In this document: positions 7,686-31,677 of the stretch, piece after piece
Numbering within the stretch: the first letter of the stretch is position 1
Layout of the letters: each line of letters begins with the position of its first letter
Source of the DNA: Cyanophora paradoxa CCMP329
Taxonomy: Eukaryota > Plantae > Glaucophyta
Direction of reading: 5' to 3'
NCBI GenBank assembly: GCA_004431415.1
Contig: QPMI01000582.1
Location: 1-64,000 of the forward strand
DNA length: 64,000 nucleotides
Position numbers and translations under genes: made by a program
The notes under the pieces: model-generated
Databases searched by the model: none
What the model saw: the letters and a program-made list of their open reading frames with translations, nothing else
Told to the model about the DNA's origin: nothing

Positions 7686-7704
7686 TTATGTTTCAGTATA
7701 TTAA

Positions 7705-8550: not shown

Positions 8551-8660
8551 ATGTTGAGGGCGTTGGAAATTCTTTCTAAACCCCTACTGGTGCCAAAAAG
8601 ACATGATTAATACCCTAAGACCTGAAATAAATGCTTACTACCCTAGTACCTGAAACGCGC

Positions 8661-8735: not shown

Positions 8736-11700
8736 CGCGGCGTCGAAGGCCGCCCAGCCCTGGGTGCGCGCGTTGTCCTTGTCGAGGGTGCCGGCCGCGG
8801 GGCGGTCGGCCGCGGCGATCTGGTACAGCGACTCGGCGCTGGCGTCGCTCTTCGAGTACGCGTGCGAGTCGGAGGTCGACTGGACAGACTGCAGGTAAAC
8901 TGCGGCACGATCACGTGGTCAGGCATCGATATCTAGATTGATGGTTTGAGTTCTGATCGTCAGACAGGACCCGGAGCGCACCCTTGAAGAGAGCGGTGCC
9001 GTCATTGTCCTGGATCTCGCCACTAGATCACGCACGAAAAATGAAGCGATCAGACAGAGACATAGAAGATGAAACGAGCGCATTGATATCTAGAGCACGC
9101 ACCCGAGGTCGCCAGGGCCAGTCCAGGTGAACACGCCGCTGTCGGCGTCGATGTCGTCGAGAGAGACGACGGGCTTGTACGGGTCGCAGGGGTTGGTGGT
9201 GAAAAAGGAGGTCGGGCTCGCGGCGCTGCACTTCTCCGCGTTGCAGGCGATGAAGCGGAGCTCGTACTTTGCGTTCTTCGTCAGACCCGACTGCGTGTGC
9301 GGGATCACCGCCGCCGCCCCCGTCAGTGTGGGGTCGAGGGCGCCGGTGGACGACCAGGTCTCGGACGGCTCAATGCTCGTGTTGGCAGGGATGTGGCGCC
9401 ACTCGACTGCGGCGCAGCCAAGTTAAATAAAAGCGCAAGAGCAAATTTTCAGAGGCTGGAAAGTCTCAAGATGCGCGACGCACAAGTGATGCTGACGATC
9501 TGGCTGCCATCGCTGGCGTCGCCATCGTCGCCGACGGCGCCGTCGGGCAGGCTGAAGATGGCGGTATCGCAGGTGTTGTCCTTGGCAGCGCCGTTGGGAG
9601 CCTTCAGGCCCGACGGCTTCTCGGCCGACGTTGGCCCTCGCTTGCTCGCCTCGGACGAGTTTTTGCCGCTGTCGCACGCGCCGACCTTGATCTTGAACAG
9701 GTAGCTGCGAGACACGCTGCCGTGAGCGAACAGCAAAGCGAATCCACTCGCGCGAGATCGCACCTGACGCCGGGGTCGAGAGCGGTGATGTTGGCCTGGA
9801 TCGTGGAGGTCTGGCCAGGGGTCGGCACGGGGATGGCGATCCAGCCATCCTCGTCCCTGAAGCACGGGCCGCCGTTCTCGCAGTTCGGGTGGTTGACCGC
9901 CGCCGTCATGTCGACCACGTCGGGGTCGGTCTCGGTCTTGGTGGCCTGGAGGTAGTACGTGCAGATGACCTGGTCCACGCCGCCGGCCTTTGGGCTCTCG
10001 TGCGAGCCGTAGCCGTCAGGCACCGGGGCCCTGCCGCACACGGGGTGTCAAGCGGAAGCCCAGAGTGCGAGATCGACGCTGGACCGGAGCTGGCGAACCA
10101 GGCGAGGTCGACCTTGCCGGGTTCTCATCGTCCTTCGCCTCGGTGATCGACGCATCGTCCACGGGCTGCGGGTTGACGACAGGGACGGTCCAGTTCACGG
10201 GGAGCGGCGTCGACGAGAGCCCGGCAGCGTTCGTCACAACGACGGAGATGGTGATGTCCGTGCCGGGACCATCTGGCAGACCAGCGGCGTGCTAGGGACC
10301 GAGCAATCGCTTGCAGCGGGGTCGCAGACCGCATCCGCATATGTCTCGCCGTTCGTCTGTCCCTTGATGGTGTACTGCGAGCTGTGTGAGGCGATGCGCA
10401 GGAGCCGTGGAACGGATCTGGATCACAAGAACGAAAGACTAGGCTACATGAGCTAGAAAGTGGAGACGCAGCACCTTGTAGGATGCGACAGCGGAGCCGC
10501 CATTGTCAGTAGTCGCCAGCCAGGTGAAGTCGAAGCAGGTGTTGTAATCGCTGCGCATGCGCAAGAGAGTTTTATGCACCCGATCAATGCATGTAGACCA
10601 TTGCGCGTGCACATGCGCTGCAAAGATATTGTGAACACGCACGCGTTGGTGACAGCGATATCCTTTGGCGTGACCGGGAGCGGACGAATCGCTGAGCAGG
10701 CACATACATGTGAGCGAAAACGGGATCGCTGCAAGGCATGGTGAGGGGGTGGCGAAACGCACCATCGGGGGTGGACTTCTTGGTGCTCGCGGGGCTCGAG
10801 TCGAGGGCCGGAGCGCATTGGGTGCCCTGGTTGGCGACCACCGAGTAGGTGTATTCCGTCTTGGGGCTCAGGCCGACAACGTCGACCCGGACCTTGCTCT
10901 CGCCGTCCACAGTGGTCGGCTCGAGGCCGCCCCACTCGCAATCGTCATTGCCATCCGGGCACGGGGACATGGTCATGGTGTACGTGATGGAAGAGCAGCC
11001 GCCGTTCCAGCGGCGCGGGGTGTCCGTCGTGCTGTCGGAGAGGGGGAGCCACGAGACGGTGGCGGTCCACTTGCGCGAGGTGGTCTCCACGCCCGGCTGG
11101 CCGTCGTCGGTGGGGTCGTTGGTGTAGGTCACGCCGACGGTCACGCCGTCGGGGCGGACGTCTGCGCGAGTGTGAGACGCGCGCGCCGGGCGCTTGTGCA
11201 TTTAGATCTCTTCTTGTTTAATTTTCCAGCAGCACGCACTGTCGACGCGGATCTCGGAGGTCTCGCCATTGTTGGAGCCCGTCTCGGAGCCGCAGTCGGT
11301 CGGGCCGGCGATGGCCGTCACCTTGTAGTCGTGCTCGCTCCCTAAAATTTGCAAACTCAAGTAAGCAGAGAATTCGAGAATGCGAGTGCGAGGCTGAGCG
11401 CGCGGCCGTACCAGGCTCCAGCCCGCTGTCCGTCCAGCAGTAGCTGTATCCGGTCTTGCCGGTCAGGGCTGTGTCCGACACGGAGATCTTCGACGAGGTG
11501 ACCCCATCGGAATCGGGATCGCGCTGAATCTGATACTTGCAGATCTGGCGCGCGCATTGAGCCAATGAAAGTGAGAAAAGAGCACTTCAATAACGCAAGA
11601 ACCTTGTAGTTCGCGGGATCGCCGCCCTGAGCATCGAAGTCAGCTGCAGGCCCGGCGACCGTGCGCAAGCAGCGCGGCGGCCCCAGGACGCACGGCGTAA

Positions 11701-14700
11701 GTGGGGTCGTTCCAGCACACTTGCACGGTCGGGGCCGTGCAGGGCGTCTCGGAGTTCCCGCACACGTTTTCAGCGACGGGCGCGGGCGCTCCCGGGTCGG
11801 TCGCTGCAGGACCGGTGCCGTCAAATGGCCGCCATGTCATGATCATAAATCCATCTTAAGCGCACGGTCGGTCTCAACGGAAAGCTTGCGGGTCGGCGAC
11901 ACCGCGGGCGCCACCGGTGTCAGGGGCTGCGGCGAATCGCCAACGTCGTTGAAGCAGTTGTACGTGACCTGATTCAAAATTATGCACGCACGGTCAGCGA
12001 AAGCCAGATAAGAGCAAAGCCAGATAAGAGCGTAATAGATATTGATTAAAATCAAACGACCGCGCACGTCGTAGAAGTAGCCGGGGTCGAGACCGGTGAA
12101 GCGGATGTCGTTCTTCCAGTCGCCCGAGAAGTCCGCCGGGATGAAGTAGTCCTTGCTCTGGATCTGGTACTTGGCGACCAGATCGTCGGCGGACGCGCCG
12201 GGCACGGCTGTCTGGCGGCGGATCTCAACCGTCTGTGAGCGCAAGCGCCACGTCGGCATGTCATCAGGACCAAGTACGGCCGCAGCCGCTGCGCGCGGGG
12301 CGCATGCGCACGCAGTTGCGGAGAGTGGCGCCGCCGTCGAACGCCGGCTTCTTGATGTCGACCTCGATCCAGGTCTTGTCCTCGCCGCTCGTGCGCTCGT
12401 CGAGGTCGTACGGCTCGACAGCTGCACGATCGCGGGCAGTTTGCAATGGTGTCAAAAACGGCGGCAAAACAGCGAGGAGCTCGAGCGCACGGTCCATCTC
12501 AAACGTCTCCTCTGCCCCCACAGTGCAGCGCTCCGGAGCGTACGCGCCGTCGACGGGGGACACGTTGCAGACGGTGACCTTGCACTTGTACGAGCCACCT
12601 GACCACGAGCACGCACACGCATCGAGTTGAGTGCGGTGTGCGAGCTCAACACGAGATCGACGCACCAGGCTTCATCAGGCCAACGTCGATCGCGCGCTGG
12701 GACATGCCAGTCACGTCCGAGTCGAAGGTGAAGCCGGCCGAGAGTGTGTCGGCCAGACCCTCGCAGTGCACGCGGAAGACGGTCTCCGCGGCGCCTCCGC
12801 TGCTCGTGCGTCAGCTAGAACTCTTCAACTGCAACCGCTCAAGGTAAATATTGATCATGAGAAACCAACGCACTCGTAATCAATAGTCGAGTCGGACTCG
12901 CGCTGGTCCTGGCCCAGCTTCGTGCAATCGACGCTGCTCGTCGGCGTCGCGCGGGCCGGGGTCCGCCACGTCCACTCGAGCTTGCCCTTGTACTTGCGGT
13001 TCCCGTCGTAGCCGGAGAAGCCGTAGCCCGAGGCGGTGAGGTCCATGGTCGGCTTCTTGGGCGCGGAGGGCGCGACGATGGGCTGCGTCCACGTCTTCGT
13101 CACGACAGCGCTCGCGTAGTCCTCCTCGTTGACGGCCCGAATCTGCCGCGCAAGCGCGTGAGACTGAGCTGGCGTGCATGATTACTGGTCGTTCAATGCA
13201 GACCTGTGCCTCCATGTCGGCGCCAGCGATGAGGCCGGTGAGGCTCTTGGACAGAGCGGTCCCAGCGACCGAAGCATCTTCGCCCCAGCCCACGGTTGCG
13301 CTTGCGGTGCCGCCCCCGCACGAGGTCGTAAGCCCGTGCCGGCGCATGTCCTTCCAACGCACTCGCGGAGGTGTCGGCGTCGAAGGTGGTGGGCACGGCG
13401 GGATTCGTGGCGCGGTTCTTGAACGTCTGCCCGTCGTCGGAGTCGGAGGTGAGCTCGACGCCGGACACCGTGTCCTTGTTGGTGACCGTGCAGCTGGGCG
13501 TCCACAGCACGGCCGCGAGGGGCAGCGCGGGATCCGGCGACGTCTCGCTGAAGGAGAACGACAGCGAGGCCGCGTTTCCGGGCACGGTCTTGGTGACGAC
13601 TGTGGTCCCCTTGGTCACCTTTGCAGTGTACTCCTTCAGCGGGGCCCCTCTGAGCGCCGCCCATTCCGTGTCAGAACAAGGGGATTATTCCAACTAAATC
13701 GAAGCATTGCACCCGTTGCTCGAAGGGGCAGTGATCGTGCAGGTCGCGCGCTTGTAGAGGGGAGTGCTCGGGTCGCCCTTGAGCCCCGTGACGACGGCCG
13801 GGACGGTACAGCTGATGCCGCACTTGGTCGGCTTGATGGCCGGCTGGTGCCAGTCGAAGGAGTTCGAGTAGCCGCTCCGGCTGGCCTCGTTCGTGGCCTG
13901 GATGGCGAACTTGTAGTTGTGGCCAGGCTGCAGGTCGACGTCGTTGGTGAAGCTCAGGACGCTGTTGGCGAATCCGGTCTTCGTGCTGCCCGAAACCGCG
14001 GCCCAGTCCTTCACGTCGCCCGTGCAGGCGTCCGCCTCGGTGACCTCGCAGTACAGGAGCTTGTACGAGCTGAGTACGGGGGCGCCGTAGAAGCTGGCCT
14101 TGCGCCTGGAGAGGGAGAGCGCGGGCGTGAGCTCGCGCGAGGGGTTGAGCGCAGGCGAGGGCAGGTCCGCGTGGCGCACCAGGTGACGGTCGCCGTGTCG
14201 TCGTCCTTCTTGGTGATGTCTGTGATGGCGACGCCGCTGTGGGCGCTCCAGTCGGGGTCCTCGGGGTCGGTCTTAAAGGTGCCCGTGTCGTCGTCCGTGC
14301 CGCAAGTTGCGGTGTGGACGGTGACGGTCGCCGAGTAGGTCGTATCTGCGCGGCGCTCAGCGATGGCAGGCCTAGGCTTACGCCCCGGCGGCGGCCGCAG
14401 CGCGCACATGGGCTGAGGCCCGTGACGGTCTTGGAAGTGGAGGTGGCGCTGATGCCAGAGTAAGTGCTCCCCGCAACGGAGACGGTGAAGCTCTGAACGC
14501 CGCCCCTGAGGATGGGTGTCAGCTCAGTGAGAAACATCATGCAGTATTATGAAATCATCAGAGATCTGGAACGAACTGGCAGCCGCCGTCGTAGACGTCC
14601 TTCCAGCCGATGATGCCGCCGCGGGATCCGTCCTTCTTCGGGTCAATAGTGACGCGCGGACTGACGGCTGCGACGCGAGTGACAGCGGGTGAGGCGTGCT

Positions 14701-15679
14701 CGAGGACTTTTGGCGTTGCATCGAAAAGGAGAGGTGCGCACGGTCCTTGGTCTTGCTCGTCTGAGCCGTGGAGGAGAACGAGTCGATGACGGGACCGGCC
14801 TTGCTCCAGACCTGCACCTTGAGCGAGTAGTGGAAGCCTGAGGCGGCCCGTATCGCGTAAGCTCTCAGATGCTACGCCTGGCGAACCTCGAGTCCCCAAC
14901 ATGCGCACCGGGTTTGATGGTCTGCTCGCCGAGCGTGTAGTGCTCGCTCTTCTCGCTGGAGGCGACGAGCGTGCAGGCCGTGAGCGCCTTCTGGGGCTGG
15001 TAGTACACGCCGCACTCGTAGAACCAGGCTGCAGCCGCGCAAGGAGATGAGGACGTGATCGCGAGGAAAGAAAGGGCGCCAAACGCGCAAGAGGATGCAC
15101 CCTGGTAGTAGTTGATGAGGCAGCCAGTGCAGCCGTCGTCCGTGTAGTTGTTCAGCGGGTTGATGGCGGGGGCGCTCCACGACGGGGTCGCCTTTGTGTC
15201 GTCGCTGCACAGAGGCCGTCAGATAGTTCAAAGCGAATCGAACGAGCGCAAGAGAGACTCTGCACCTCGTCGAAAAGTCGATTGCGAGCTGCGAAGCCGG
15301 CTCGGGATCGACGGCGAAGAGCCGAGCCGCGGATGAGGAGCTCGACGCCTCGAGGCCCGCCTGCGCGAGCAAAGCCAGGTGTAAGCGGTGGCGCAAGCTT
15401 GCCAGCGCGCGCTCATTGCACTTGCGCGGAGCCGCACCGAGTTGACAGCCGTGACCGTGGCGAAAATCAGCGTGTAGGGGTTGAGACCGCAGACATAGGT
15501 GTAGCGGCCGTCGGGGCTGTTGCCGTCGACGGTGGAGAGGACCGAAACTAACGGGCCCGACGTCGACGCGACCGTGACGGTGTAGCTGTCGGGCATCGGA
15601 CACGCGTGAGCAGCGCGAGCTCGAGGTGTGCGAGCGCGCAAGGGCGCGCGACGCACTGGCGGATGAACTCGGCGCCAAA
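8736..15679 (-). CDS. Host multi-exon fibronectin type III repeat protein, downstream part (truncated by the viral insertion)
   Basis: Many short GC3-rich exons with FN3 signatures (GLTKNAKYELRFIACN, GLSPKTEYTYSVVA, GLDPGYFYDV, LQPGHNYKFAIQATN, GLNPYTLIFATVTAVNS). They are separated by short introns with GTGCG-type donors and CAG acceptors. Confidence 0.85.
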
Positions 15680-15992
15680 CGTAAGGAGCTGTTTCGCATG
15701 TCGCAGACGGCCCCGGACGGACCTCGACGGGCCGAAAACGGCGCGACCTTTTGGACATCCCGCTAGTTCGCGAGCTTTAACAATGGATGGAATTTGAATT
15801 TTGAACACGGCCGTGTCACGGCGGCTATCAGCCGGCTGAGTTCGAGTTCGAGCTGGCTAGACCAAATTCTATATCCCCCCAAGCCATCTCCCCCCCCTTC
15901 CAAGCCACGGCCAGCTGCAGCTAGATTGCGGCCAGCCACGGACTTGCGCGGGAAAAGCAAAAGCGCTTATAGCTTAGCGTTCGGCGATCGAG

Positions 15993-17749
15993 ATGCCGCT
16001 CTCTGTGCTGTCTGCCAAGGTCGGCTCAGCGTTCGGTTCCATTAGAGCGTGGCTGGGCGGCGCCAGCGATGGCAGGCCGCGGCACGGCCAGATTGGCGGC
16101 AGCACCTGCGGCAGCCAGGACGACCTCGGCGAGGACGTGAATCCAGACGACTTTGGCGACGCAGCTTTGAGCGAGCAAGTCGTTCAGCCTGCGCATGCAG
16201 CGCCAGCTGCGCATGCGACGGCCGCGGTCGCGCTGGCGCCTCCCGCGGCGGAGCCGGCGGGCGGGAGCGACTCCCCACAAGTCTCGCCAGTACGCTCAGA
16301 GCTCGAGCAGAGCCCCGGCAGCGGCTGCTGTGAGACGCCAGGGACGCCTTTGGGGGGGGGTACGCCTGTACAGCCGTGTACGCCGCCTGTCGCAGCTGCC
16401 TCATCAGCGACCCCCGTGTACACGCCTGATCGCCCGCGTCGCAAGCGGGTAGTAGCTGCGCCCTCGCAATCGCAGCCTTCGCATGATCAGCCGGCCACGC
16501 CTCCACGCACGCAGCCGCCGGCGGCAGCGGCCTCGCCAGCGACCCCCGTGGACATGCCTAAGCGCGTGAGTCGCAAGCGGGCAGCGGCGGCGACCTCCCA
16601 GCCTTCGCCCGCGGCGGCACCGAGCGAGCAATATGAGGATCCCTTCGTTGCCATGGAGCGGTATATGGACGATCCCTCTGTCGCGCCGTCGCCTGCCAGC
16701 TCAGCCGCGAAGAAGCCAGCCCCGAAGAAGCCCGCCACGTCCACCAAGCAGCAGTGCAAGCGGCGCAAGTGCGATGTCGAGATGACGGGCGAGGAGGAAG
16801 ATCGATTCACCCCCTGGGACAAGCCCGGGCGGCACCGCTTTCGCATCGAGGAGGAGGACGCCGCACTCTATCGGAGGCTCACCGGCTGCAAGCGGGTTTC
16901 CGATGCGGTTCGCATGGCGTCCAAGCTCCTTGAAGCGATCGAGTACCTTCAGCAGCGTGTGCGCGCGCCGTTTCACGCCGCCGTGCGCTTCGCCCGCAGC
17001 TTGCCTCGCTGATTCGGGCCGCAGGATGTCCTAGACAAGGGTCTAACTGGCGCGGAGCTCGCCAATCAACTGAAGGCGAAAGTCGACGTGTTCCTCCGTG
17101 CACCGGCGCAGCGTGAGGAGCTCCAACAGAAGTGCAGCTCCCTGGAGCGGGAGCTCCCTGATCTGCGGTGGGCCAACAGGGAGAAGCAGCGGCAGATCGC
17201 TCAACGGGAGGAGAAGATCGCTCAGCTGGAGAAGGAGATGATGCAGCTCAACGCCAGTCTGGTGAGCCCGCCGGCCGCCGCGCCGCCCGCGCCGCCGGCG
17301 CCCGCAATGCGCTGCTGACGGCGGTCCCTCCGGCGCCCGCAGAGAGCGACTCGGGTCAAAAACCTCGAAGAGGAGTGCGAGGAGCTGCAGAACCAGAACG
17401 CTGCGCTGCAGACGAAGGTGGATGACTTGGAAAACAAGGTCCGCGATTGCCCACACGCGTGCGTGCGCCCGCTGGCGCGTAACGCGGCGCGGCGCAGGTC
17501 TCAAGGATGAAGAGGAATTGGGACTTGGAGTTGGAGCGTGAGGCGAAGGTGTGGCGGAAGGAGGAGCGCATGTACATAAAGGAGGTGGAGGAGCTGGAGG
17601 CCGTTATCGAGTATCTCTACATGAGGGACGTGCTCATGCGGGAACCCCGGGGGCCTAGGGTCGCAGGGTGGGTCGCCGCGGTCCAGCAGCTACACGCTGC
17701 TGTGCCGCCGGAGACGTCGCCTTTCGAGGCGCCCGCCATCGGGCGCTAG
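15993..17749 (+). CDS. Element gene A: Pro/Ala-rich N-terminus, possible ribbon-helix-helix motif, long coiled coil (spliced)
   Basis: ORFs 15993..17012, 17088..17318 and 17507..17749, plus a small exon near 17343-17438, can be joined by short GT-AG introns. Heptad-rich E/K/Q/L sequence. Confidence 0.6.
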
Positions 17750-17946
17750 CCCCGGCCCGCTCGCTTCGTCCTGCATAGCTAGAGCTCTCATCGGATGAGA
17801 AAAATTTGTGTTCCTTTTGCGCATGCGTCGCCCACACGACAGCCGGGCGGGGACGCGGGGCGCGGCTGGGTTGGCTAACTGTGCGTGCATCCGGAGCCTC
17901 CGAGCAAGCCTAGCCTATAAGCTCGGCGACGCTGAGCTAGGTGCGC

Positions 17947-18081
17947 CCGGCGCGCCTGGTAATCTGCTCGGGAAGGTCGGAACGGCTTGGGCACGGAACC
18001 GGGGTCGGCCGCAAAGGCGGACCGTGCCAGACCCAATCGGCGCTGAGCTACGCCGGCGCGCCTGGTAATCTGCTCGGGAAG
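17947..18081 (+). repeat. 29-bp exact direct repeat pair
   Basis: CCGGCGCGCCTGGTAATCTGCTCGGGAAG at 17947-17975 and 18053-18081. Confidence 0.9.
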
Positions 18082-19284
18082 CTCGGGATGAGTCAAGGCC
18101 TCGCACCTGGGGCTGGCAATCCATGCACTGCGGCAAGCAGCCGCTGCCCCACCGACCTCGTCTCGCAGAAGCGGGTCACGGAGATGAAGGAAGACCGCGT
18201 GAAGCGCCGCGGGCGCTCTCGTGGCATGCCGGGCCGGGCCGGGCGTATGCGTACCCGGTTGGCCAGCGGAGGAAACTCGGCTGACTGAGCGGCTCGCGCT
18301 TTCGACAACGTGGCACTGTGGCACTGTAGTACACCTGGCGAGGCGCACGCCGCGACAACGATTCGGCGAGGCGCACGCCCTCGCCCGCGAACTTGGAACA
18401 TACGCACGCCTGCCCTGGATCGCGGACCGAGCCTCGGAGACTTCCGCCCTCTCCGAGGCTCATGGCTGAAGCTGCGATAGCATGGTGCCGGCTGGCTGAG
18501 GCCGCCCGTGCCGGAGCAGCTGCAGCCGGGGCCAAGTGGCTGGCCGGCGCCTTAAGCGCGCGGCTGCACTGCGAGCGGGGAGCTGGGCTCGCTGTCGGCG
18601 GCAATCTTATCCGCTCTCAAGGTTTCGCAAGGCTGCGAGCGCGCGGCGACCCCCGGTATCGCGTTCGCAATTTTTGATCTGCCAGGGAATCTGCACTCCG
18701 AGGCTTGCGATTGAAGCACGGCAGCCTCGTATCTTGATTAGAACTTTTTATTCAAGATGTAGAGGCGTCACACGGCGTTATTTAGTGCCCTGCACAAAGC
18801 CCCCGCGATGGGCCCATTTAACCCGTCATACCATATGACTCATCATACGCCTATACACTACGTTACAGCTAGTCTTCTGCTGACTTTTGGCCCTTCCAAA
18901 TTGGGCCCATCGCCCCAGGAGCTGGGAGACATCGAAAAAAGCTTAGAGAACCTTTTTAAAGCACTATATAAGGCCTCCTATGCAGCTGCAGGGTCGGGGG
19001 AGGCCTTGTATGGCGCGAAAATAGGCTCCCGAGGCCCCCGGACTGCCAGAGTGTCCCGGAGGCCCCCGACTGTCCCGCCAGGCGCCCCGCCCTGTCAGCC
19101 CGCCCCGCCAGCCCGCCCGCCACTCTCGGTAGTCACTGAGTGCCACGGTGCCACGGTGCCACGGTGCGCGCACGATAGCAGAATAACTAGTAAATCTGTC
19201 GTATTCAAGCCAGGTGCAGACTGCAGCTGGTGACTCTAGCTGCAGACATCGTCCGGCCGCGAGACGAGGACGCCGTCGCCGGCA

Positions 19285-19573
19285 GGGCGGCGACCGGCGG
19301 GGCGGGGGCGGGGCCGGCGGGCGGGGCGGGGCCGGCGGGGCGGGGCGGGGCGGGCGGGGGCGGGGCGGGGCGGGGGCGGGGCGGCGGGGCGGGGGCGGGG
19401 CGGGGCGGGGCGGGGCGGGGGCGGGGCGGGGCGGGGCGGGGGCGGGGCGGGGCGGGGGCGGGGCGGGGCGGGGCGGGGGCGGGGCCGGCGGGGCGGGGGC
19501 GGGGGCCGGCGGGGCGGGGGCGGGGCCGGCGGGGCGGGGGCGGCTAACGGCGGGGCGGGGGCGGCTAACGGCG
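19285..19573 (+). repeat. (GGGGC)n-like G-rich tract with G-quadruplex potential
   Basis: About 290 bp almost entirely of G runs separated by C, bracketed by a ~35-bp direct repeat (CATCGTCCGGCCGCGAGACGAG...) at ~19247 and ~19591. Confidence 0.9.
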
Positions 19574-20306
19574 CTACGCTTCGTCGTCGGCATCGTCCGG
19601 CCGCGAGACGAGCACGCCGTCGCCGCGACGCAGGCGGCGGCGCTTGCACCGAGCAGCAGCAGCAGCCCCGTCCGCCTCCGCCGCCGCCTCCGCCGCCTCC
19701 GCCGCCGCCGCCGCCGCCGCCTGCTGCTGCCGGATGCGCACCCGCTGGAAGTGCTCCGCGCACTTGAAGAGATTGTCGCCGAAATGCTCCATCTGCCCCG
19801 CCCGCCGCTGCAAGGCCGTCACGTTGTCATAGAGAGGCTTGAAGGCCGCCTCCTCGTAGAGCCCGAGGGGGTCCTGCCCGCAGAAGCGCGCCGTGCTGCG
19901 GTGCTTGCGGATCTCCGACCGCAGGTTAATGGCCTCGAGGAGGTTGTTGTGCGCCAGCGCGACCTCGAACTGCTCGTACAGCTGCTCGTGCTCGCGCATC
20001 CACGCGCGCGCGTACTCCAGCAACTGCTTGAGCTCGGCCAGCTTGTATGGCCTCACCGAGTCGCGCTCTATTGCGAGGTTGACCTCCAAAGCTGCCTGGT
20101 GGCGCCGCCTGATCTCATCCTCCTCCTCGAGCGCGCGCTCCTCGTCCGCCTTCATGCGCGCCCTGCGCTCGGCGCGCTGCCGCTGGTCCATCGCTCTCCG
20201 AGTCGCTGCTGTTGATCTCGATGACAGACGAAGTCATTGGGCGATTGCACGGCGCGTTGATGGTCTCCTCCTGGTCCTCCTCCTCGGACACGTAGTCAGC
20301 GGGCAT
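19574..20306 (-). CDS. Element gene B: helical/charged protein of unknown function
   Basis: ORF 19574..20191 has coding-like codon usage. A probable short acidic first exon starts at ATG 20306 (MPADYVSEEEDQE). Confidence 0.5.
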
Positions 20307-21178
20307 ATGCTTCGCTCCACAGCTAACATAGCTACACTGTCGATGCGACATAGCTAACGCTTGAGGCTGCTTCAGGCCCACCAGCTGCAGGGCGTTCAGC
20401 TGGAGTTGGACGTTCAGCAGTTTGCGTACCCAGTCTGGGCATGCTCCCCTTGCTTAGCGCGTCATACCCATATCGACGAGCGAGCATCGCGGCCGGCAAG
20501 GACCGCGCGGGTGGACCAGCCGCTTCGCCTAAGGTAGCTATGCATCGCAATTGCGCATTATCGCGCATGCTGGGCTCGCCTGCTGCTCTTCGGCGCCTAA
20601 CTGTCGCGGATGTGTATGCTTGCTCGCGGCGCTCGGAGCTGCCGCTTCCGCAGATGGCAGGGGAGGTACACGCGATCTTTTTTTCCGAGTTTTGAACCCG
20701 CCCGCGCGATGCAGCGACCCATCGCGCCCCGTCCCGCGGCCCAGCCCGCGCCCCAAACGTTTCCAGCGCCCGCAGCAGTCGTTTTAGAGATGGCGGACGC
20801 GTCGGTCGCGTACCAGGCGCTTATGCGGATCATCGCAGTGCTCACCCACAGCCGAAACGCCCACCTGGAACTGGAGGCGCGCGGCATTGCGTCTCCATTG
20901 TATCCGCATAGCTTAGCTTGCACGGCGGCGCTTCAAGAGGCCACCGCAGTGGCTGTGTTCCTCCAGTGCATCCTGCAGAGCCCTCCAGCTTCGCCACCCG
21001 GGTCGCCATCGGCTCCAGCGAGCCCGCAATCGCCTCAGATTAGCCCAGAGCAGCAGCAGCAGCGCGGTCGTCGCGCGTTCGGCGCCGACGTGGTATGCCG
21101 CTCATTCAAATTCGATGTCATGACTTGACTTGCCCGCGCTTACGAGTGTATGCTCTCTGCCCGGCCGCGAGCAGACGA

Positions 21179-24100
21179 ATGCAGTTCTTAATGAGGCGCC
21201 GAGCCCGGCGCCGCGGCCGGCCCCGGCCCGGCACCGCCCCGAAACGCGCTCGCGGCAAGGAAGATGTGCCGCCTGAGGAGCGGATCGTCCGCAAGGCGAC
21301 GCTCAAAGCGCGCGACGAGCGCATCGCAGTGCTTGAGGCGGAGAACAAGAAGCTTAGGGAGGAGCACCAGTCGAAGCGCGCCAAGGTCCCGCGGACTTCG
21401 GCACAGCGTGCAGCGACCATCTCGCGCATAGCTAGGCAGGTCCCTGGGAAGGGATGCTCGGATACGTCCAGGCAGCGGCGCACGCGGTTCCTCCGCATGC
21501 TGCTCTCGACGATTCTAAACGCTGCGAGTCCGGACATCCAGATCCGCCTCCCCATGTTTAAAAAGAACTTCGCGAGGTACAAGGCGGGGCGGCGCGCGCG
21601 CAGGCATATGCATGCTTATCCAGGGCGCCCCAGGAACAAAGGAGAGGAGGAGGGCGCCTATCAGAAGAGGAGGGAGGCGCTGGAGGCGGAGGCACGCCGC
21701 CTCGTGAGCATCATCGGGCCACACGCAGTGCGCGTTATTATACATAAAAAGAGCTACCGAGAATCGTACTTTAATAGGCTACAAAATCGTTGGAGAAGAG
21801 CACCTTTCTGAACCACCGTCCGCAGGCCCAACGAGCCCTGGAAACGAGCAAATCGGGTCAGCTGCAAGTGAAGAAGGCGATGAGCATCGCCTGCAGGAAG
21901 CTGCGGGACACCTTCCCCGACTGCGAGATTCTAGAGTGGAAGGACCGCCACTGCATCTCGGACGTGCGCCCTTTCTCGAATGTTTTAACCCCCCATCCCG
22001 TTCTAAACCGACCCGGGGCAGGCGACGTACTTTGAGTTCACGAAGCTCCTCAAGAAGGCCCTGAAGAAGCACTTCGTGGGGCTGCGAGCCTTCCTCCCGT
22101 CGAAGCACTGCATCACGAAGCTACGGGGCAAGGTCAACGATGACCTCGAGAAGGCGCGGCGCGCGCGCGCGGGGCGGGGGTGAGGGACGAGGCTCACCGA
22201 GCGGTGCAGATCGTGCAGATCGTCGAAACAGCGGCGGGCGTCGGCGACGAGGAGAACAAGGGCAAGCCGGGCGTCATGCTCGAGCTCTTTGTGCCTCCGT
22301 CGAGCGCAGCGCCGGCGGCGGGCGGAGAGGCGGCAGCGCCGGCGGCGGGCGGAGAGGCGGCAGCGCCGCCGCCCCGCAGAGCTGTCACGCCGACGCCCGC
22401 CCTGTCGGCCCTCATCAGCGCTTTCGTCCCGCTGCACAAGCACAGGGGGAAGAAGATCAGACCTCGAGTCCGCCTGGCGGGCGACGGGACGATCGCGTTC
22501 CGCGGGAAGAGCGTCTCCACGACCGACGGCATGACCTGCATCGTGGCAATCGTCGACGGCTACTACGTCATCGAGGAGGACGGGACGCAGGCGTACCACC
22601 CGCTGAAGGGCGTTCAGAGCTGCTACGCCCTCCTGCCCCTAATGCTCTTCGGCGGTAGCGACAGCGAGGAGAACCTGCGCCCACGCATCAAGCCCCTCGC
22701 CGACATGGTCGAGTACCTGAACGAGAACCCGCTCACCCTGATCCCCGGGTACGAGCACGACAAGCCCGTCGAGGTCGAATTCTTGGTGACGGGCGACTAC
22801 AAGTTCCTCCGCGTCCTCCTCGGCTTCGACCTGTGCCCGCACTGCGATTCTGTCCACCGACGCGGGTCAGTTCGCCGAGTCACACGCGCTGAGATTCGGC
22901 ATGGGGCTCACGTTACTGCAGGTCCGAGTGCTCGGCGGTCGAAGTCGTGCGCGCAGCAGGGCCGCGGGATCGGGACGGCCTCCCTCCAGCCAGCGAACAG
23001 AGAATCCGCACCCCCGAGCACGACGCCAACGCCCTCCTGCAGCCGCTCCCGAACAGCATGCTGCCCGTCGCTGCCGTCGAGGTGAGAAGCCCGCGACACC
23101 TCGCCTCAGCGGACGCCAACGCGCACCTCAGGTCCGGCTCGACGACGCCCTGCACGGCATCAAGAGCTGGGTGGCCGGGTTCTTCGTCTACTTCTTCCTC
23201 GCCCTCGCCTGTGGTGCCTCCGAGGACCAGCAGAAGCGCATCGAAGACCTGCAGCGTCATCTTCGCGATAAATACGCGCGGAACATCAAGTTCGAGAAGA
23301 CCGAGAACGGGGCCACCTACAAGTTCTTCCAGAAGATCTCCGCCAACACCGCCAAGAAGATCCTGGAGGACCCCGAGGCGCCCGACACCCTCTTCAGCAT
23401 CTGCTTCGGCGACAGTAAGGAGAGCTGGAGCGAGAAGACGAGGGGCATGCACGAGATTTGGCAGCTCCGCCAGATCATCTACCAGTACGAGCGGAACATG
23501 AAGCCCGACGAGGAGGCGCGGCAGCAAGTTATCGAGGCCGTCGCCGAGCTCCAGGGCCTGATGGAGACACACTTCCCGTTATGGAAGATCTTCACACGCT
23601 ACATGCACTCGACGCTTGCGCACCTCGCGTTCTGGGCGCGCGTCGACAACACGAACGCGCCCGGCCGTTGGAGCTGCGAGGTCATCGAGTCCTACATGGG
23701 CCTCCTTCGGCGCCTGCGACACACCGTCACGTCTCTCGGTGGCGGGTGGAACAAGGACCTCGACATGCTCAAGCAGATCATGACGCACCAGCGGCGGCGC
23801 CTGGCGCTGTGGATGCGGAACATGACGGAGGCGAGCGCCGGCGGGAAGGACGCTGCCCACGCCGAGTACGACGCGCCCGTCGCCGCCAAGGCCTGGCCAG
23901 ATGGGCCCTTCATCCCCCGACCTGCGGCCCGTCCCCACCGGTCAGCGGCTATGCAGGGCGAAGGGGCGGCGGCGGCGCCGCCGGGGGCGAGGAGGTGGCA
24001 GCGGTGCCCCTGCCTGCGGACGAGGAGGAGATCGACGAGGATATTGAGCTGCAGGAGGGGGATCCGGTGCCGGAGGACGAGGTGCCCGAGGAGAGCGGGG

Positions 24101-24261
24101 ACGAGGAGGAGGAGGAGGAGGAGACCGCCGAGTACGACGCCGAGGCAGAGGAGGAGGCGGAGGAGGAGATGGAGGCGGAGGATGAGGGCGCCAACATGCT
24201 CGATTTCGATGATAGGGCCCTAGCAGAGGTTCTAGCAGACGATCTAGCGGAGGGGAAATAG
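21179..24261 (+). CDS. RAG1/Transib-like DDE transposase (spliced, about 6 exons, acidic tail)
   Basis: Motifs collinear with the RAG1 core: GRPR AT-hooks; LAGDG (D at 22483); LLPLMLFGGSDSEENL; TGDYKFLRVLLG (D at 22795); CPHC; DDALHG (23141); TRYMHSTLAH (H at 23606 and 23621); GRWSCEVIES (E at 23687). Compare RAG1 SCDG, KPLCLMLADESDHETL, TGYDEKLVR, CTLC, IDALHC, TNYFHKTLAH, GAWASEGNES. Confidence 0.85.
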
Positions 24262-24300
24262 ACGAAATGGATTTGGACCAGACATAGCGCACCTTGTAAC

Positions 24301-26330
24301 CTAGATAGTGCGATTCTCAGTAGCAGCTTCACGACTTTGCCCTCTTGCGCGCCGCCACCGCGGCCGCGAGCTGTGCCGCGCGATCCTTCCTGCTGCAGGA
24401 TTAGGCGAGCAAGTAGCCGAGCGGGGGCGAGGGGGAGGGGGCGCACTTGGGGACCGAGGCGGATGCGGCGGGGGCAGGTAGGGCGGCAGCGGCCGGTGGG
24501 CAGCAGCAGCAGGGGCCGACAGGGCGGCGACCGGCGGGGCGGGGGCGGGCGGGGCGGCGGCGGCGGCGGCCGGCAGGGCGGCGGCGGCGGGGGCCGGCGG
24601 GGCGGCGACGGCGGGGGCCGGCAGGGCGGCGGCGGCGGGGGCCGGCAGGGCGGCGGCGGCAGGTTCTGAAGGGGCTGCTTCGGGGACAGGCGGCGCCTTG
24701 GCGACGGTGTTGGCGCCGGCGCGGCACCGGCGCGGGCGCTTCACGGGGACAGCCGCGAGGGGCCCCGCGAGGCTGGCGATGCGCTCGCCGTCGGGGCCGT
24801 ACTCGTAGCTCGGAAGCTCGAGCGTGACGTGCCCACCTTTCCTGCCCGAGCGCTTCGTGGCCACGATCCGACCGGGACCTGCCGCGCCCAAGGAGCAGAG
24901 CTTCGTAAGCGAGCGGCGCGGCGAGGGCGGGCCGGGCGCACGCTCGTCGAACTGGACGACGTCATGGGAGCCCGTGTGGCGCGGCACGATTAAGCCGCCG
25001 TACGCCTTCTCGACGGTGACGGTCTGCATCTCGCTGTGCTTCCGGATCGCCTTCCCGTCCGCGTCCCGCTTGCAGACGCGCTTGGACGCTTGCGCCACGC
25101 CGGAGGGACCGAGAACAGCTGCAAAGAGGTCGGAAAAAGAACAGCGAGCGGGAAAAAGGAAGCGGCTTCCACCAGCAGCGGTCTCGCGGTCCGGAAGCTC
25201 GATAACGAAGCGATTCGCCGCCGGCAGCTTGTCAACCGGGATCGGCTGGCCCGTCTTCGGGTCGATGGGCGTGGCGACGTGCGCGACCTGCGCCACGATG
25301 TTCTCCTGCGATGCGCACCGTTAGAGGATAGGAAAAAGAACTTCGAACGAGTCATAAGAGCCGCAGACCAACATTGCCGGCCCGGCCACCGGGATCTTGA
25401 CGTTGACAAGCTGCGTCCCGGTCTTCCGGCGCTTGAGGGCGTTCGCGGCGGCGTCCTGAAGGTAGCCAATCGCCTCCACGCGCTCCTCCGGCCTCGACAG
25501 CGGCCGGAGGAAGCACGCCATCTTCTTCTTCGCCACTCGCTTGAGCCTCGCGTTGAAGGCGAGGGCGACGTCGAACTGGAAGGAGCCGTCGCCCGGGAAC
25601 GTCATGATTTGCTTACAGACGTAGATGTGGGGATCGGCGTGGTTGAGGGCTTTGTACTCGTCCGCGGCCACCACCTTCGCGGGTGCGTGAACCTGCGCGC
25701 ACGGGCATCGGACGCTGGAACGGGGCGCGGGCGCGGCGGGCGGACCGTCACGTTCGAGTAGTAGATGAGGTGGTTTGCGATGGCCACGGCTGCCTGCTCC
25801 CCGTCTGCCTTGATGATCACGCTGCCGAGCCCGCAGTCCTTCACATCGGAGTCCTCCGGGCGCACGAAGCGCCGAAGGATGACGCCGTTGACGGAGTAGT
25901 TGAAGTCGCCGCGCTTCGCCTTCGTCTGTGTTGGGAACTCGCCCTCGACTCGCGCCAAAATCGTTTCACCTGGGCGCGGGAAATGGAAGGGCTTCGGGCG
26001 AACGACGCTGAGTTCTGGACACAGCTGGGTGTCTGAGCTAACTGAACAGATGACGAAGTCGCCAAGGCGAACGTGGTAGGCGCGGCCGCTGGTGTCCAGG
26101 CAGCGGACCGTTGCCGCGGGGTGCTCGCCCTTGAGGATGTCGAGGTCAGGGAGCTTGGGCTCCTTCGCCTTGCGCGCCTGCTGAGTGATCTTGTTGACAC
26201 GCTTCATGTTGCCCTTGCCGGCCCACGAGCTGCTGCTGTCGGGTCGCTTGCCGTGCCAGCGGTGCCGACGTCGGGCCTCGTCGAAGCCGTCATCCCAGAG
26301 GCTGGGTTCCTTTCGCTTTGACTGCTTCAT
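24301..26330 (-). CDS. Element gene with an N-terminal BAH-like domain, convergent with the transposase (spliced)
   Basis: YHVRLGDFVIC...ILARVEGEF...VILRRFVRPED...IYYSN...EY...IYVC follows the BAH consensus order. ORFs 25602..26330, 25321..25674 and 24301..25296 link through short introns. Pro/Ala-rich tail. Confidence 0.6.
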
Positions 26331-26579
26331 GCACGGCGGCGTGCAGGAATGCTCGCGCTCGGGCGTGCGCGATGGCGGGAAGCTAGCTAGTCCGGCCTAG
26401 CCGAGGGAAGCTGACTAGCAAGCCGGCCTGCTGACCGTTACTGTGACCGTTGTGGCCGCGTGTGTACGCCACTGTGTACGAGGCCAAGTTCGAGCTCAAG
26501 TTTGCGCTGGGCTAATTTCATTGGCGGAAGAAGTTAACAATGGGCGGGGCGTGACGCAAACTCCGTTCAGTTTGAAACG

Positions 26580-29500
26580 AAAGTCCGCGGGGAGGGTCCA
26601 GGCGACGTCCGCGCAGAAGGCGGTGCGCGGCGTGACGACGACCTCGAAGCCTCCCGGCGCGTTGCCGGGGACGGAGCAGCTGACGGAGCCGGTCGTGCTG
26701 TCGCCCACGCTGTTCACGGTGACGACTTGGACCTGAAGGATCGCGTTCAATGCTCATGCAATGATACATATTCATCGGGTGCTTCGGACTTCATTCGCTA
26801 TAATATCAAAGTAAAGATCTAGACGCACGGTGTAAGTGCGGTTCGGCTGCAGGCCCGTGGGCGAGTAGCACGTGGGGGTCCCCGGGGTGACGTCGATCCA
26901 CTGCGAGTTGAAGACGGTCGGCGTGCCGCCGCTGTACTTCAGCTTGTACTTCGTGATTGCGCTGCCGCCCGTGCCGGGCTGCGCGCGCGTCAGATACAGC
27001 AGCTGACGCCGGCGCCAGATCTGGTTATAGACAAGCATCGATCCAGTTTCGCTTGTGCGCGTGCGCACCGCATTCCAGCAGACTTCGAAGGTGCCGTCGA
27101 CGTCGTTGCTCGACGATGCCGTGCCCGAGCAGTACGGAGACGGCGCCTGCGGCTTCGTCGCTGCGAACGCGGGCGTGAGGGACCGCACGGGAGCTGGCCG
27201 CCCGAGCCCGAGCTCGGCGCAGCGCATGCGCACCGGGGAAGTCGTAGGTCATGGTGGCTTCGGCGCTGCTGTTGCCGGCGTCGTTGTACACGACGACCTT
27301 GAAGCTGCCGTTCCCGCCGGGCGCCCCGGTCTTGGTGCTCTTGTACTCTGTGTCGGCGTCCGCGCTGACGGCGGAGCCGCCGTCGATCTTGTACGAGCTG
27401 CGATGGGCTCGTGATCAGGTAGCAGTTTTAACAGATGAGAGAAAGGAAACGCAGGATGGCAAGGCGCACGCGACATCGAAGTTGGCGTCGCCGGGGCCGC
27501 CGGCGTTGGGCTGGGTGGGCGTCTTGAAGAAGACGTCGACGGCGCGCGACGTCGCGTAGCTGTCGTCGCCGACCTTCTCCACCTTGGTCTGCGTCGCCGC
27601 CCCGGGGTTCTTGTCTGCGCCCACCCTCGGATGAGCGACGAAGGGCGGCCGAGACCCAGAGAGGATCAAAGGACACGTACACCACTGGTCGTACTGCGTG
27701 GTCTCCGGGTCTCCTGTCTTCGAGTCCCCGTTGGTGCAGGTGACCTTCACGCCGTAGTTGCGCGTGCCGGCCAGAAGCGGCACGACGTCGGTCGGCACGG
27801 CGGTCTTGACGACATTGGCGCTGCTAAGCGGCGCGCTGACTGTCCAGCTCTTGTCGACGACGGTCGAGTGACCGGACGGAGGAGCGGGGCCGGTGAAGGT
27901 GATGGTGCAGTGCGTGAGGGCGGGGCCGCCGGTCTCCGCCGGGGGCTTGAAGGTGACCTCCGCAGCCTCCGGGTCCGCGGCCGTCGAGTAGGCCGACAGG
28001 TCCGTCACCTTCCCGGGAGCGGTGCTGTCGGTGCTAAAAGAGGCGGGGTCCGACGTGGCGCAGTAGCGCGGCGTCTTGGTCGCGTCGTCGGCGGTGTTGC
28101 AGCAGGTCACCTGGGGTCGATCGCGAGCAGACGCGGGTGAGACCGAAGCGGAGCAATTGCAAGGCCCAGTTCTTGCGGGGACCTGACCGTAATAGAGTAC
28201 GTGGTGTAGCGCGTCAGATTCGGGATCGTCGCCGTCCACGGGGCTGCAGCGTTCAGGTCGGACGCAGAGCCGACGGCGACTCCGTCGAGCGTCGCAGTCG
28301 CTGCAGTGAATCACGAGTGCGCGTGAGAGGAATTCGAAATCGAAGCGGGCGGCTCATGATCATGCGCAGACCCGTGCAGGACTTGTAGCTGAGGGCGTCG
28401 CTCGCGCCGATGCCGTCGTAGTCGGCCACGGTCCAGGGAACGGTGATCGAGGTCGCCGTCGTGGTCACGCCCGAAGTCGTGATGGTCGGCTTGTTGGGGG
28501 CATCGGGGCTCGTCTTGACGGTGCCCGACACGCTGCTCGAGAGGTCGCCCTGGTTCGTGCACGTGATGGTGTAGCTGTACGAGGTGTCGGGAAGGAGGCT
28601 GCTGTAAGTCTGGGCGCCCCCGGTGGCAGAGCCGGCGGTGGCCGCGCCGCCGTTGAACACGACTGCGGCTAGTGTAAGAAGTAGAAAAAGCGAGAGCGAG
28701 CTCTGTGCTGCGCACTGGAGCAGCTCTTGTAACCCTGGCCGCTGACTCCATCCTTGTCCTGGATTGCAGTGCCGCCCGTGATCGGGCCGCTGGCGGGGCT
28801 GTACGTGATCGTGGCAGAGTTTGCTGTTGCGGATGTTGTCGCAGTCGGTGCGCTCGGAGTCATCGCTGCGGGAGGCGCGGCGTCAGTCTGATCACTGCGA
28901 ACTACCAGCTGCAGCGAGGAGAAGAGCGCTAATAGTGCATGGTCGATCTAACGCAGCACATGCGCACCGGGGGTCCGGAACGTTGCCGCCTTGGCGCCGG
29001 TGAGGCCGGCCTGGCTGTTGTACTGCGGGAGGTTGGTCGCGCCCGCCTGGGCCGTGTACTGCGTCCAGCACTTCAGGTCGGCGAAGGAGGCGGTGCCGCT
29101 GCCCGAGAGACTGGTGATCGTGACGGACGCCGACGTGGCCGCCGGCGTCCCAGTCGCCGACGTGCCCTCGAAGAGTCTCACCTGCGCGCGACCCGAGAGA
29201 GAACGGCCGGTTACTCGGGAGGCGCTCGACGTCGACCCAACGGGTGCGAACCGCGGCGTTCGCGTTGAGGGCCACGCCCTTGTTGACGTCGCGGCCCGTG
29301 TTGGTGACGGAGAAGGGCACGGACGCGGAGGCCTTCTGGGCCGCCGCGCTGGCCGTGATGCCGCCGGTGCCAACCGTGAGGTCCGCGACGCTGGGCTGGA
29401 CCGCGAGAGTGACGAAGTCCGCGCTGTTCGCCGTCGAGGAGACGACTTTGCCCGACAGCGTCGTGCACGATATCGTCGAGTAGTACATCTGCGAGGTCCG

Positions 29501-31677
29501 GGTTTAGAGTTCGCAAGATGCTTGCGCGCATGAGGTGAATAACAATTGGAATTCGACGAGGGGATTCTGCTGACCGTGTAGTCCAGGAGGCCGGAAATGG
29601 TGACCGTGATAGTCACCGGTGCAGAGGTAGTCGAGGGCGCAAGGGAGGTCGCCGGGGCGGTCGGCAGCACATCCGTGGTCTTCTCGAGGAAGTTGTCCAC
29701 CTTCCGGAAGGTCTTGATCTCGCACTTGCTGTACCTGCGGGGCGACAATAACATTAGATCACGATTGTACTCATTAGTCAATATATTGTAGTCGATGGTC
29801 GATTGCAACTAGAGCCACGGTGAGCACGCCAGTTCAGCACTGCGCGCACCCCTGGCCGTCGACGTCGTCGCCCACGGGCATCGTGAACTGCTCGGTGGCG
29901 CTCCCCGTCCCCACGGACGTGATCGTGGGCGGGCTGATGCTGCCCGTCCAGTCCTGCTGCGCTGCAGCCACGGGAGCGTGTCAAGGGTGGAGGGTCGAAA
30001 CCAGCCAGAGAAGCTCACGCGGCATTCTGACGATCTTGCAGACGATGAGGCTGCGACGCATCGCGAGCTTGCTCCCATCATTCGGCAGGTTGCTTGTCGT
30101 GTCCACGGCAGAGTAGGTGCAGACGCGGTACGGGCGCCAGTAACTGTGTTCCAGATTACGCCTGCACTTGCCAATGGCAAGCTGAAGGTTCCAATCTGCG
30201 CGCACCGAATATTGAAGCTGGAAGGCTTCCAGTCCGCGTTGTTGCTTTTCAGGCCGTTCTCTTCGTCTACACCGTACCAGATGCCGTTTGCGGGGGTGAA
30301 TTCTGGCGGGTACTCCGTCCGGGTGGACGTCGAGTCAAGGTCGATCACCTGCGCCACGGTCACACGCACATCACGATCACGGCCGCTCGGACGGAGCTCG
30401 AGAGCGAACCTCTCCGTACTCGTTCACTCCCCGGGCGATCAGGTCGGGATCCGCCAGTTGCATCGAAGCCCACGACCTGATCGTGATCGTGATCATGAGG
30501 CGATGATAAGCATATGAGCAAAAGCATCGAGTACTCGATACAATTAGACAGTGCTTATACGAATATGACGAACGCAAAATTACAGAGTCGTTTTCATTTT
30601 CAATTTAATCTGATGATTGGCGAAGGCGCGCGTGAAAGCACTCACACGTGCGCGTGCACGTCGCGGATGATGCTCGGGGGAGCGTCCGTGCCCTGGTCCG
30701 CATTGGGGTCTAGCTGCAGCTCAACGTTGATGCCTCCCGTCTGCGAGCGCGCGCGCACGCCAGCGATTAAGCGCCGAGAATGGTATTTCGAAGATCAAGG
30801 CGTACCCCGCCTCCTCCGGGGACCTGGACAGGGGTTGCCAGCGAAGGCTGCGGCCGCGATGCTGCGCGCAGGCTTTTTAGAAAGGGGCGCGCACAGCCCG
30901 TGGTCCTTGATCAAGCGCACCGGGGACAGCAAACGCTTTGGTAGCGGAGATGCTGCTCCCCATGCTGATGGTGACGTTGTACGTCCTGATGTCATTTACG
31001 TCGACCTTTCCAGTCGCCGTATTCTTCAGCGAGTCATATCTTCACGCATCGCGGCTGTATAAGACAAGGTGCGGTCGCAGCAGAAAGCGGGGCCCGCCGC
31101 GGGGAAGTGTGTGGGTCACCGCACCCGCGGGAGAAGCCGGTCACGGTTACGACGGTGTCTTCAGTCGTGCTGGTGGCGACGACGTTGACAGCCGGCGGCA
31201 GGGCACCAATGCAGACCACTGGAGCCTTGCAGATCGCATCATCCCAAACCGGAGGAGAGTTGAACTCGACCTGCACGTGAGCGGTCGAAGTGAGTCATCA
31301 TCAGTTAATCAGCCGCCCTCGAGCTCGAATATCTCGGTTATCTTTTAATTACAATCTCAGATGAATCGCAGCGGCGCACCCGGTACGTGCCCGTCTGGGG
31401 CGCGCGGAACGAGATCGTGGCCGTGCCGGAGTGCGCGGTGCTCCCCGAAGTCGTCGTTACGGCGATGCCTGGTGCAAGCTCGCGTCAGCGGCTGGCACAG
31501 AGGCGATTGCGAGAGGTCCGACGGGACGAGGGCGGGACGAGGCTCACTAGTACTGAAAGCATCAGCGGGAGCGGCAAGGACGGTCGCAAGTAGAATGGAC
31601 AAGCTGAAGGCCGCCAAGCGGAGGGTTCGCCGGCTGCGGCCGGGGCGCCGGGAGGCGCCCGCTACGCCGACGGACAT
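26580..31677 (-). CDS. Host fibronectin type III repeat protein, 5' part with signal peptide
   Basis: ATG at 31677: MSVGVAGASRRPGRSRRTLRLAAFSLSILLATVLAAPADA (basic region, hydrophobic core, AxA). Later exons carry GLLDYT, LKCWTQYT, LLPDTSYSYTITCTN and GLQPNRTYT. Confidence 0.85.

Follow-up and report, generated by a model that had tools for sequence, protein, structure and literature searches.

A young 10.9-kb transposon with a putative RAG1-like transposase core splits an FN3-like coding exon in Cyanophora paradoxa

The split exon and its host gene

We analyzed a stretch of 64,000 nucleotides from the glaucophyte alga Cyanophora paradoxa CCMP329 (contig QPMI01000582.1 of assembly GCA_004431415.1, positions 1 to 64,000; hereafter the window), whose minus strand carries a large multi-exon gene for a protein with FN3-like modules. 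One coding exon of this gene is interrupted by an insert of exactly 10,900 bp (15680..26579) that reads on the plus strand, antisense to the gene, and that is a transposon whose transposase possesses a core of RAG1-like architecture. The insert is bordered at either end by the trinucleotide AAA, a target-site duplication (TSD; left copy at 15677-15679, right copy at 26580-26582), and when the insert is deleted together with one AAA, the gene reads CCC GCG GAC TTT GGC GCC GAG in frame. The restored junction, W-T-L-P-A-D-F-G-A-E-F-I-R-H-Y, follows W-x2-P-x3-G-x2-I-x2-Y, the pattern of an FN3 B-C loop. On the plus strand, the empty site reconstructed in silico consists of the left flank ending in GGCGCC, then AAA, and then the right flank GTCCGCGG.

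The upstream part of the split exon (26580..26732, minus strand; VQVVTVNSVGDS...AWTLPADF in translation) is preceded by the acceptor CCTTCAG/ at 26733 and runs over 153 nt from 26732 to the codons GAC TTT at 26580, with a GC content at third codon positions (GC3) of 0.93-0.97 in frame. WTLPADF is encoded by 26600..26580 of this strand, translation in the frame that ends at 26580 gives ...VTPRTAFCADVAWTLPADF, and the codon TTT that closes this part (26582..26580) represents one of the two copies of the target duplication. The downstream part (15657..15679, minus strand) reads TTT GGC GCC GAG TTC ATC CGC CA, that is, F-G-A-E-F-I-R followed by the first two bases of a His codon; FGAEFIR occupies 15679..15659, the raw frame from 15679 reads FGAEFIRQ..., and all six complete codons after TTT within 15679..15657 have G or C at the third position. 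Directly 3' of the split exon lies a host intron of 71 nt (15586..15656, minus strand; GTGCGT...CCGACAG). Splicing from the donor CA/GTGCGT to the acceptor CAG/C joins CA to C TAC and yields H-Y, and among the donors in our crude model of the host gene, the hexamer GTGCG[CT] is the most frequent. The next exon (15438..15585, minus strand; (H)YTVTVASTSGPLVSVLSTVDGNSPDGRYTYVCGLNPYTLIFATVTAVNS) starts with C TAC ACC GTC and encodes the rest of the FN3-like module. The frame from 15599 on the minus strand reads PMPDSYTVTVASTSGPLVSVLSTVDGNSPDGRYTYVCGLNPYTLIFATVTAVNSV, and past the 71-nt intron the spliced frame enters the high-GC3 frame YTVTVASTSGPLV.... Without the insert, the split exon measures 173 nt, its intron begins 23 nt past the insertion point, and it encodes the end of one module together with the A-B strands and the B-C loop of the next. 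An earlier reading made from the letters of the window by a model (the sequence-only reading) had placed the insertion between WTLPADF and GAEFIRHY, within a single FN3 exon. The coordinates and the AAA flanks bear out this position, though the HY requires the 71-nt intron; the insert does interrupt one exon, but the FN3-like module spans more than one.

The full protein cannot be made from the interrupted allele, because read-through from the exon into the element terminates at a stop after 27 residues, the element is antisense to the gene, skipping of the 173-nt exon shifts the frame, and the sole GT...AG pair that uses the ends of the element adds 13 nt. A location of the element within an intron was considered as well and dismissed: ahead of TTT no in-phase donor is usable, and the single AG in the element end gives 13 additional nucleotides, out of frame.

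The 5' host exons (26733..30150, minus strand; at least 11 in the crude model) were delineated by GC3 periodicity and a splice model. The remaining 3' exons (8738..15437, minus strand; about 18 in the crude model), which encode FN3-like modules, were delineated by GC3 periodicity, a splice model without in-frame stops, and sub-threshold fn3 matches. Between about 30150 and 8719, coding segments of the minus strand stand out by a GC3 of 0.85-1.0 that is confined to a single frame at each point. Our splice model is a simple dynamic programming that was run on each flank separately; the predicted exons were concatenated within each flank solely for translation and motif counts, and sequence searches were run exon by exon. 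It comprises 12 exons upstream and 19 exons downstream of the insert, corresponding to about 748 and 1,235 residues, with no in-frame stop. The modelled protein is rich in the motifs ...W..P...G..I..Y.V... and ...L.P.T.Y...V.A.N..G, and exons neighbouring the split one match Pfam fn3 (PF00041) at E values of 5.4e-4, 1.6e-3, 2.3e-3, and 0.1; these matches score 13-21 bits against a cut-off of 25, and none of the host exons searched surpassed the fn3 gathering score. At the level of the gene, the FN3-like character is well supported.

For the split module itself, the assignment is made at the level of the sequence pattern. Its two halves, searched separately, gave no Pfam match and no significant PDB match, and pairwise alignments of these halves with sister modules remained insignificant (z < 2.3). 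Sister modules show the same junction pattern (e.g., FKPPAETGGPALTHCTITF and GGSAITKYKLKY), and Pfam aligns the module just upstream, GGSAITKYKLKY..., with the fn3 profile from position 22 on. The same register would put the junction W-TLP-ADF/GAE-F-IRH-Y between the Trp of strand B and the Tyr of strand C, that is, into the B-C loop. Inspection of the motifs finds the FN3 core pattern (the Trp of strand B; P...G..I..Y leading into strand C; Y.Y/L.P.T.Y...V.A.N in strands E-G) satisfied by AW-TLP-ADF/GAE-F-IRH-Y-TVTV ... GRYTYVCGLNPYTLIFATVTAVNS.

The host protein, secreted according to the sequence-only reading, may be so, but we found no convincing start for it; a signal-peptide search gave only a weak candidate, the Met at 30527 (MLLLICLSS...). 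A word search with the host exon 27418-28353 returned no annotated protein of 172-546 amino acids, the host protein itself included. Further upstream on the minus strand (30650-31500), beyond an AT-rich gap (30560-30650), FN3-like peptide fragments of lower GC3 occur (e.g., DIRTYNVTISMGSSISATKAFAVPG and TATISFRAPQTGTYRV), which may belong to the host gene, as additional 5' exons, or to a neighbour that has decayed. The peptide TVTVASTSGPLVSV, encoded at 15540-15585 on the minus strand, faintly resembles the antibody JH-CH1 junction VTVSSASTKGPSV, a likeness to which we attach no meaning. A phmmer search of the PDB with the downstream half of the module returned only antibody heavy chains, with VTVSSASTKGPSV aligned to TVTVASTSGPLVSV; their E values of 3.4-9.5 are at chance level, and an antibody likeness was rejected.

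The host gene carries a second break, as the sequence-only reading had recognized. Its last coding segment (...DKDNARTQGWAAFDAAT) runs straight into a terminal hairpin with perfect 28-nt arms (8661..8735; arms at 8661-8688 and 8708-8735), the transition lying at about 8736/8737. This hairpin belongs to an AT-rich element (1-8736) that is ORF-dense (ORF, open reading frame) and intron-less on the plus strand; its GC content is 40%, and the window has 58-70% GC except for positions 1-8,700. Searches of the ORFs of this element against Pfam gave no matches, and two adjacent ones (4966-6069 and 6093-6800) faintly match the same PHROG family of virion structural proteins.

The insert and its transposase

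On the plus strand, the insert begins with CGTAAGGAGC... and ends with ...GTTTGAAACG, and its two ends share only CGT/ACG. When the 600-nt ends were aligned locally in direct and inverted orientation, no terminal repeat was found; nothing terminal was recovered, the best inverted match was 3 nt, and there was no long terminal repeat. A repeat search returned only GC-rich low-complexity pairs. Neither a second copy of the element nor an FN3 paralogue with an empty site or a similar insertion is present within the 64-kb window. A word search detected only five protein models, all near-identical ones from Cyanophora contigs, with identities of up to 100%. One model, P0001 (tig00000663_g3003), maps onto the window at 100% identity, and the models bear EukProt names of the form tig000..._g....t1. 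The copy studied here is as similar to the other copies as those are to one another. Since it is essentially identical to other genomic copies, the insertion is very recent and not a maintained arrangement. Judged by these comparisons, the insert is a young, multi-copy transposon of Cyanophora, and it is probably autonomous.

The transposase gene (20790..24258, plus strand) consists of about eight exons, all of them open, as mapped with the models P0001-P0007. Two of these exons carry the residues of interest, identified by motif inspection alone: the exon at 22375-22868 (plus strand) encodes D37, D141, and C154-x2-C157, and the exon at 23132-23950 (plus strand) encodes H159-x4-H164 together with E183/E186. 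Together they present an architecture composed of a DDE triad, ZnC2 (the CxxC that follows the second D), and ZnH2 (Hx4H, some 20 residues ahead of E), with the spacing D-(104)-D-(13)-CxxC-(about 219, across three exons)-Hx4H-(19 or 22)-E. In mouse RAG1, the corresponding residues are D600, D708, C727/C730, H937/H942, and E962 (PMC4914335).

Sequence searches assign this transposase to no family. Its ORFs matched no Pfam family at E<=1, a phmmer search of the PDB found no match and no RAG1 chain at E<=10, and a phmmer search of 1.84e9 cluster representatives returned only the Cyanophora copies and one spurious repeat protein. By sequence, the transposase family is an orphan. Structural searches were carried out with single-sequence AlphaFold2 models of two transposase exons, both of which are poor (predicted local distance difference test scores, pLDDT, of 43.5 and 56.3). 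Comparison of the second of these poor models (pLDDT 56.3) with 48,161 PDB representatives by VIA-align placed RAG1 chains in the top four ranks (Z 6.9-7.4 over 125-136 residues), Z values that fall under the caution level of the tool for helical models. Residues 1-158 of the model are collinear with RAG1 789-934 in this comparison, ending just before H937, and BbRAGL is found at rank 12. RAG1 was also the first match of Foldseek, with a non-significant E value of 0.43, and a shape search of the Atlas gave nothing usable (TM scores below 0.4). Language-model features placed the exon 23132-23950 in RAG1_ZnH2/ZnC2/RAG1_C clusters (0.93 and 0.91) and the other modelled transposase exon in a RAG1_RNase_H cluster (0.90). 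The three lines of evidence for a RAG1-like core are weak but concordant. The designation of the element as RAG-like in the sequence-only reading is retained for the motif architecture of the catalytic core; it does not extend to the 3-bp TSD, to the ends, which are not CAC- or RSS-like (RSS, recombination signal sequence), or to sequence similarity, of which none was detected.

Two further observations concern repetitive sequences. Within a GC-rich simple repeat of the element built from CGC/GCG units (19131-19164), four matches to the motif X-C-rc(X)-G-X (rc, reverse complement) lie 8-9 nt apart; at least part of the matches to this motif in the window are thus low-complexity sequence and not scars. 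Elsewhere in the window, between 36000 and 53000, the peptide GPGGTGSHLLTRTAF is encoded repeatedly on the minus strand, at intervals of some 3.1-3.7 kb (38400, 41609, 45320, and 48268), with one further occurrence on the plus strand (52881); this pattern hints at a large repeat, tandem or dispersed, that has a strong negative GC skew.

Origin of the split and consequences of excision

Excision of an element with a 3-bp TSD adds nothing to the target when it is precise, 3 bp when both copies of the duplication are kept, and 6 bp when a palindromic X-rc(X)-X scar is left, and this applies to any site in any exon. The sequence-only reading had stressed that precise removal (GAC TTT GGC) and scars of +3 or +6 all maintain the frame of the host gene; the arithmetic holds, but since it is automatic for any 3-bp duplication, in-frame excision is uninformative about this locus. 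We counted scar-like motifs in the window and found 170 X-rc(X)-X 9-mers (29.5 expected) and 34 X-C-rc(X)-G-X 11-mers (1.7 expected), some of the latter in GC-rich simple sequence. The 11-mer type adds 8 bp and breaks the frame, and its C and G are the first and last bases of the element. If it is the footprint of this element family, excision would often destroy the frame. This motif is absent from the host gene (8740-15679 and 26580-30200) and common at 30200-53400 and inside the element. In the modelled host introns (about 4.3 kb), X-rc(X)-X occurs 16 times, a 12-fold excess over the 1.3 expected. The modelled host exons hold 11 such motifs, compared to 4.1 by codon shuffling (a count reached in 5 of 500 shuffles) or 5.65 when the protein is held fixed (reached in 17 of 1,000); the exon counts rest on the crude exon model, and peptides rich in S/T and D/V inflate them. 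The contrast between introns and exons fits frequent passive insertion and excision, with traces mostly cleared from exons by selection.

Most probably, the locus records a recent chance insertion of a young 10.9-kb cut-and-paste transposon into an FN3-like coding exon, in an allele that is broken twice. The transposon, whose transposase core is RAG1-like in architecture, would have landed by chance in a coding exon of the large multi-exon FN3-like gene, where it duplicated TTT, the codon for Phe (AAA on the plus strand), within the B-C loop stretch of one module; in the assembled haplotype, it truncates the protein by a stop 27 codons into the element. A putative foreign element, AT-rich and hairpin-ended, also cuts this gene copy near its 3' end. 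Since the insertion truncates the protein and the AT-rich element also cuts the gene, the allele is most likely non-functional or being lost; the transposon may still be able to excise.

Several observations weigh against so simple an account. Given the weak excess of X-rc(X)-X in exons (p of about 0.01-0.02), in-frame footprints may occasionally have been tolerated. The open frames of both flanks are clean and their GC3 periodicity is strong; therefore, the host gene is not an old pseudogene. Flanks with the look of functional coding sequence fit the youth of the insertion, and an intact second allele, or function of the host gene until recently, may exist. It is a realistic possibility, though the less probable situation, that the insertion is heterozygous or polymorphic among strains, in which case the assembled haplotype would be the one that was hit, the intact allele would be functional, and the gene would not be lost. 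Both flanks retain intact frames and a strong codon bias and the insertion is very young, all of which speaks for this, whereas the empty-site and footprint patterns had no match in metagenome_contigs, a collection that is not expected to hold the genome of Cyanophora paradoxa. Such polymorphism is compatible with a chance insertion.

The boundaries of the insert could also be drawn differently. The direct repeat AAACG is present at both junctions (15677-81 and 26575-79), and a duplication of 5 bp is a hallmark of Transib and RAG (PMC1131882); the element would then be Transib-like, and the frame of the host would have been broken before the insertion. We prefer the 3-bp duplication AAA, because AAACG leaves 5 extra bases in the empty site and puts GAEFIR-HYTVTV out of frame, whereas the 3-bp model gives the clean junction W..P...G..I..Y, which continues through the intron into the GC3-rich frame. 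Moreover, the ends of the element would become TAAGG.../...GTTTG, which are likewise not CAC. Altogether, a 5-bp duplication seems quite unlikely to us.

A bolder idea, to which we would give only a very slim chance, is that, in Cyanophora, hairpin-forming transposons with RAG1-like cores and 3-bp TSDs repeatedly enter and leave exons of giant genes for FN3-like surface proteins, so that in-frame footprints of 3 or 6 bp become a real source of variation in loop length; the present locus would then be one such event caught before excision. If this were true, repeated entry and exit would amount to a population-level, unprogrammed counterpart of junctional diversity. If excision at this site proved frequent and its products were expressed, the locus would provide, for the first time in nature outside animals, a RAG1-like element that splits an exon of an Ig fold, and the initial step that the split-receptor scenario assumes for the emergence of V(D)J recombination could then be observed.

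The sequence-only reading had gone further and had proposed a natural analogue of V(D)J recombination, holding it equally plausible as a chance insertion into an otherwise disabled allele. Its chance insertion stands; the equality does not, since the evidence favours chance. That the FN3-like exon retains the element as part of a functional split gene, with excision through variable hairpin-derived footprints restoring and diversifying a loop of a surface protein, strikes us as scarcely credible. Such a role would draw on the RAG1-like architecture of the transposase core, on the plentiful X-rc(X)-X scars expected of hairpin-forming excision, on an insertion site that falls into a loop of the binding pole of an Ig-like fold, on the in-frame outcomes of +0, +3, and +6, and on the slight excess of X-rc(X)-X 9-mers in the modelled exons of the host. 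Against it stand the 3-bp TSD, which preserves the frame automatically, and the abundance of the 8-bp scar type (34 compared to 1.7 expected), which breaks it; the copy is as young as the others, with no sign of retention, read-through into the antisense element terminates, and the host gene is cut again by the AT-rich element. Furthermore, the site corresponds to B-C and not to F-G, the equivalent of the third complementarity-determining region (CDR3), and no paralogue within the window carries a similar insertion. The host is a unicellular alga without a split between soma and germline; therefore, excision would be mere reversion. At present, all that the locus demonstrates is that coding exons are among the places where this young family of Cyanophora transposons can insert, and the 3-bp duplication makes such insertions potentially reversible; the locus is a useful marker for excision and footprints in Cyanophora and provides no evidence of a diversification system.

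Comparison with known systems

Transib transposons are defined by 5-bp TSDs and by terminal inverted repeats (TIRs) with a CAC heptamer and a nonamer (PMC1131882). The Cyanophora transposase resembles those of Transib and RAG1 in the order and spacing of its catalytic and zinc-binding residues, and the best structural matches of the stretch before Hx4H, obtained with a poor model, are RAG1 residues 789-934. It differs from them by the lack of detectable sequence similarity, and the element differs by its TSD of 3 bp instead of 5 bp and by ends of the type CGT.../...ACG with no CAC heptamer, nonamer, or TIR. Since Chapaev-type elements already belong to the broader Transib superfamily, which comprises Transib, TransibSU, Chapaev, and Chapaev3 (Kapitonov and Koonin, 2015; PMC4411706), a RAG1-like core in an element that is not Transib-like is not without precedent. 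The architecture of catalytic and zinc-binding residues may be shared by a clade wider than Transib and RAG.

In the split-receptor model, V(D)J recombination originated when a RAG transposon inserted into the exon of an Ig V-type receptor. The locus in C. paradoxa resembles the starting point of this model in that a cut-and-paste element with a RAG1-like core resides in an exon coding for one loop of an Ig-like beta-sandwich. In contrast to the model, the host domain is FN3-like and not Ig V, and the site is the B-C loop, which is CDR1-like, and not F-G/CDR3. The element, probably autonomous, is mobile and multi-copy, has kept its own genes, and possesses non-RSS ends; we saw no domesticated recombinase, no RSS, and no sign of programmed excision. 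In addition, the host is unicellular, and the same gene bears a second, unrelated disruption.

The plant transposons CACTA/En-Spm and PIF/Harbinger offer another parallel. Their exon insertions are flanked by 3-bp TSDs, in-frame footprints are left in revertants, and the resulting unstable alleles are classic. The Cyanophora element differs from these transposons in that its ends are not CACTA and its transposase, an orphan by sequence, is RAG1-like and not demonstrably of the CMC or PIF type. Its insertion resembles theirs in the 3-bp duplication, through which excision products that are a multiple of 3 would restore the frame with 0-2 extra residues.

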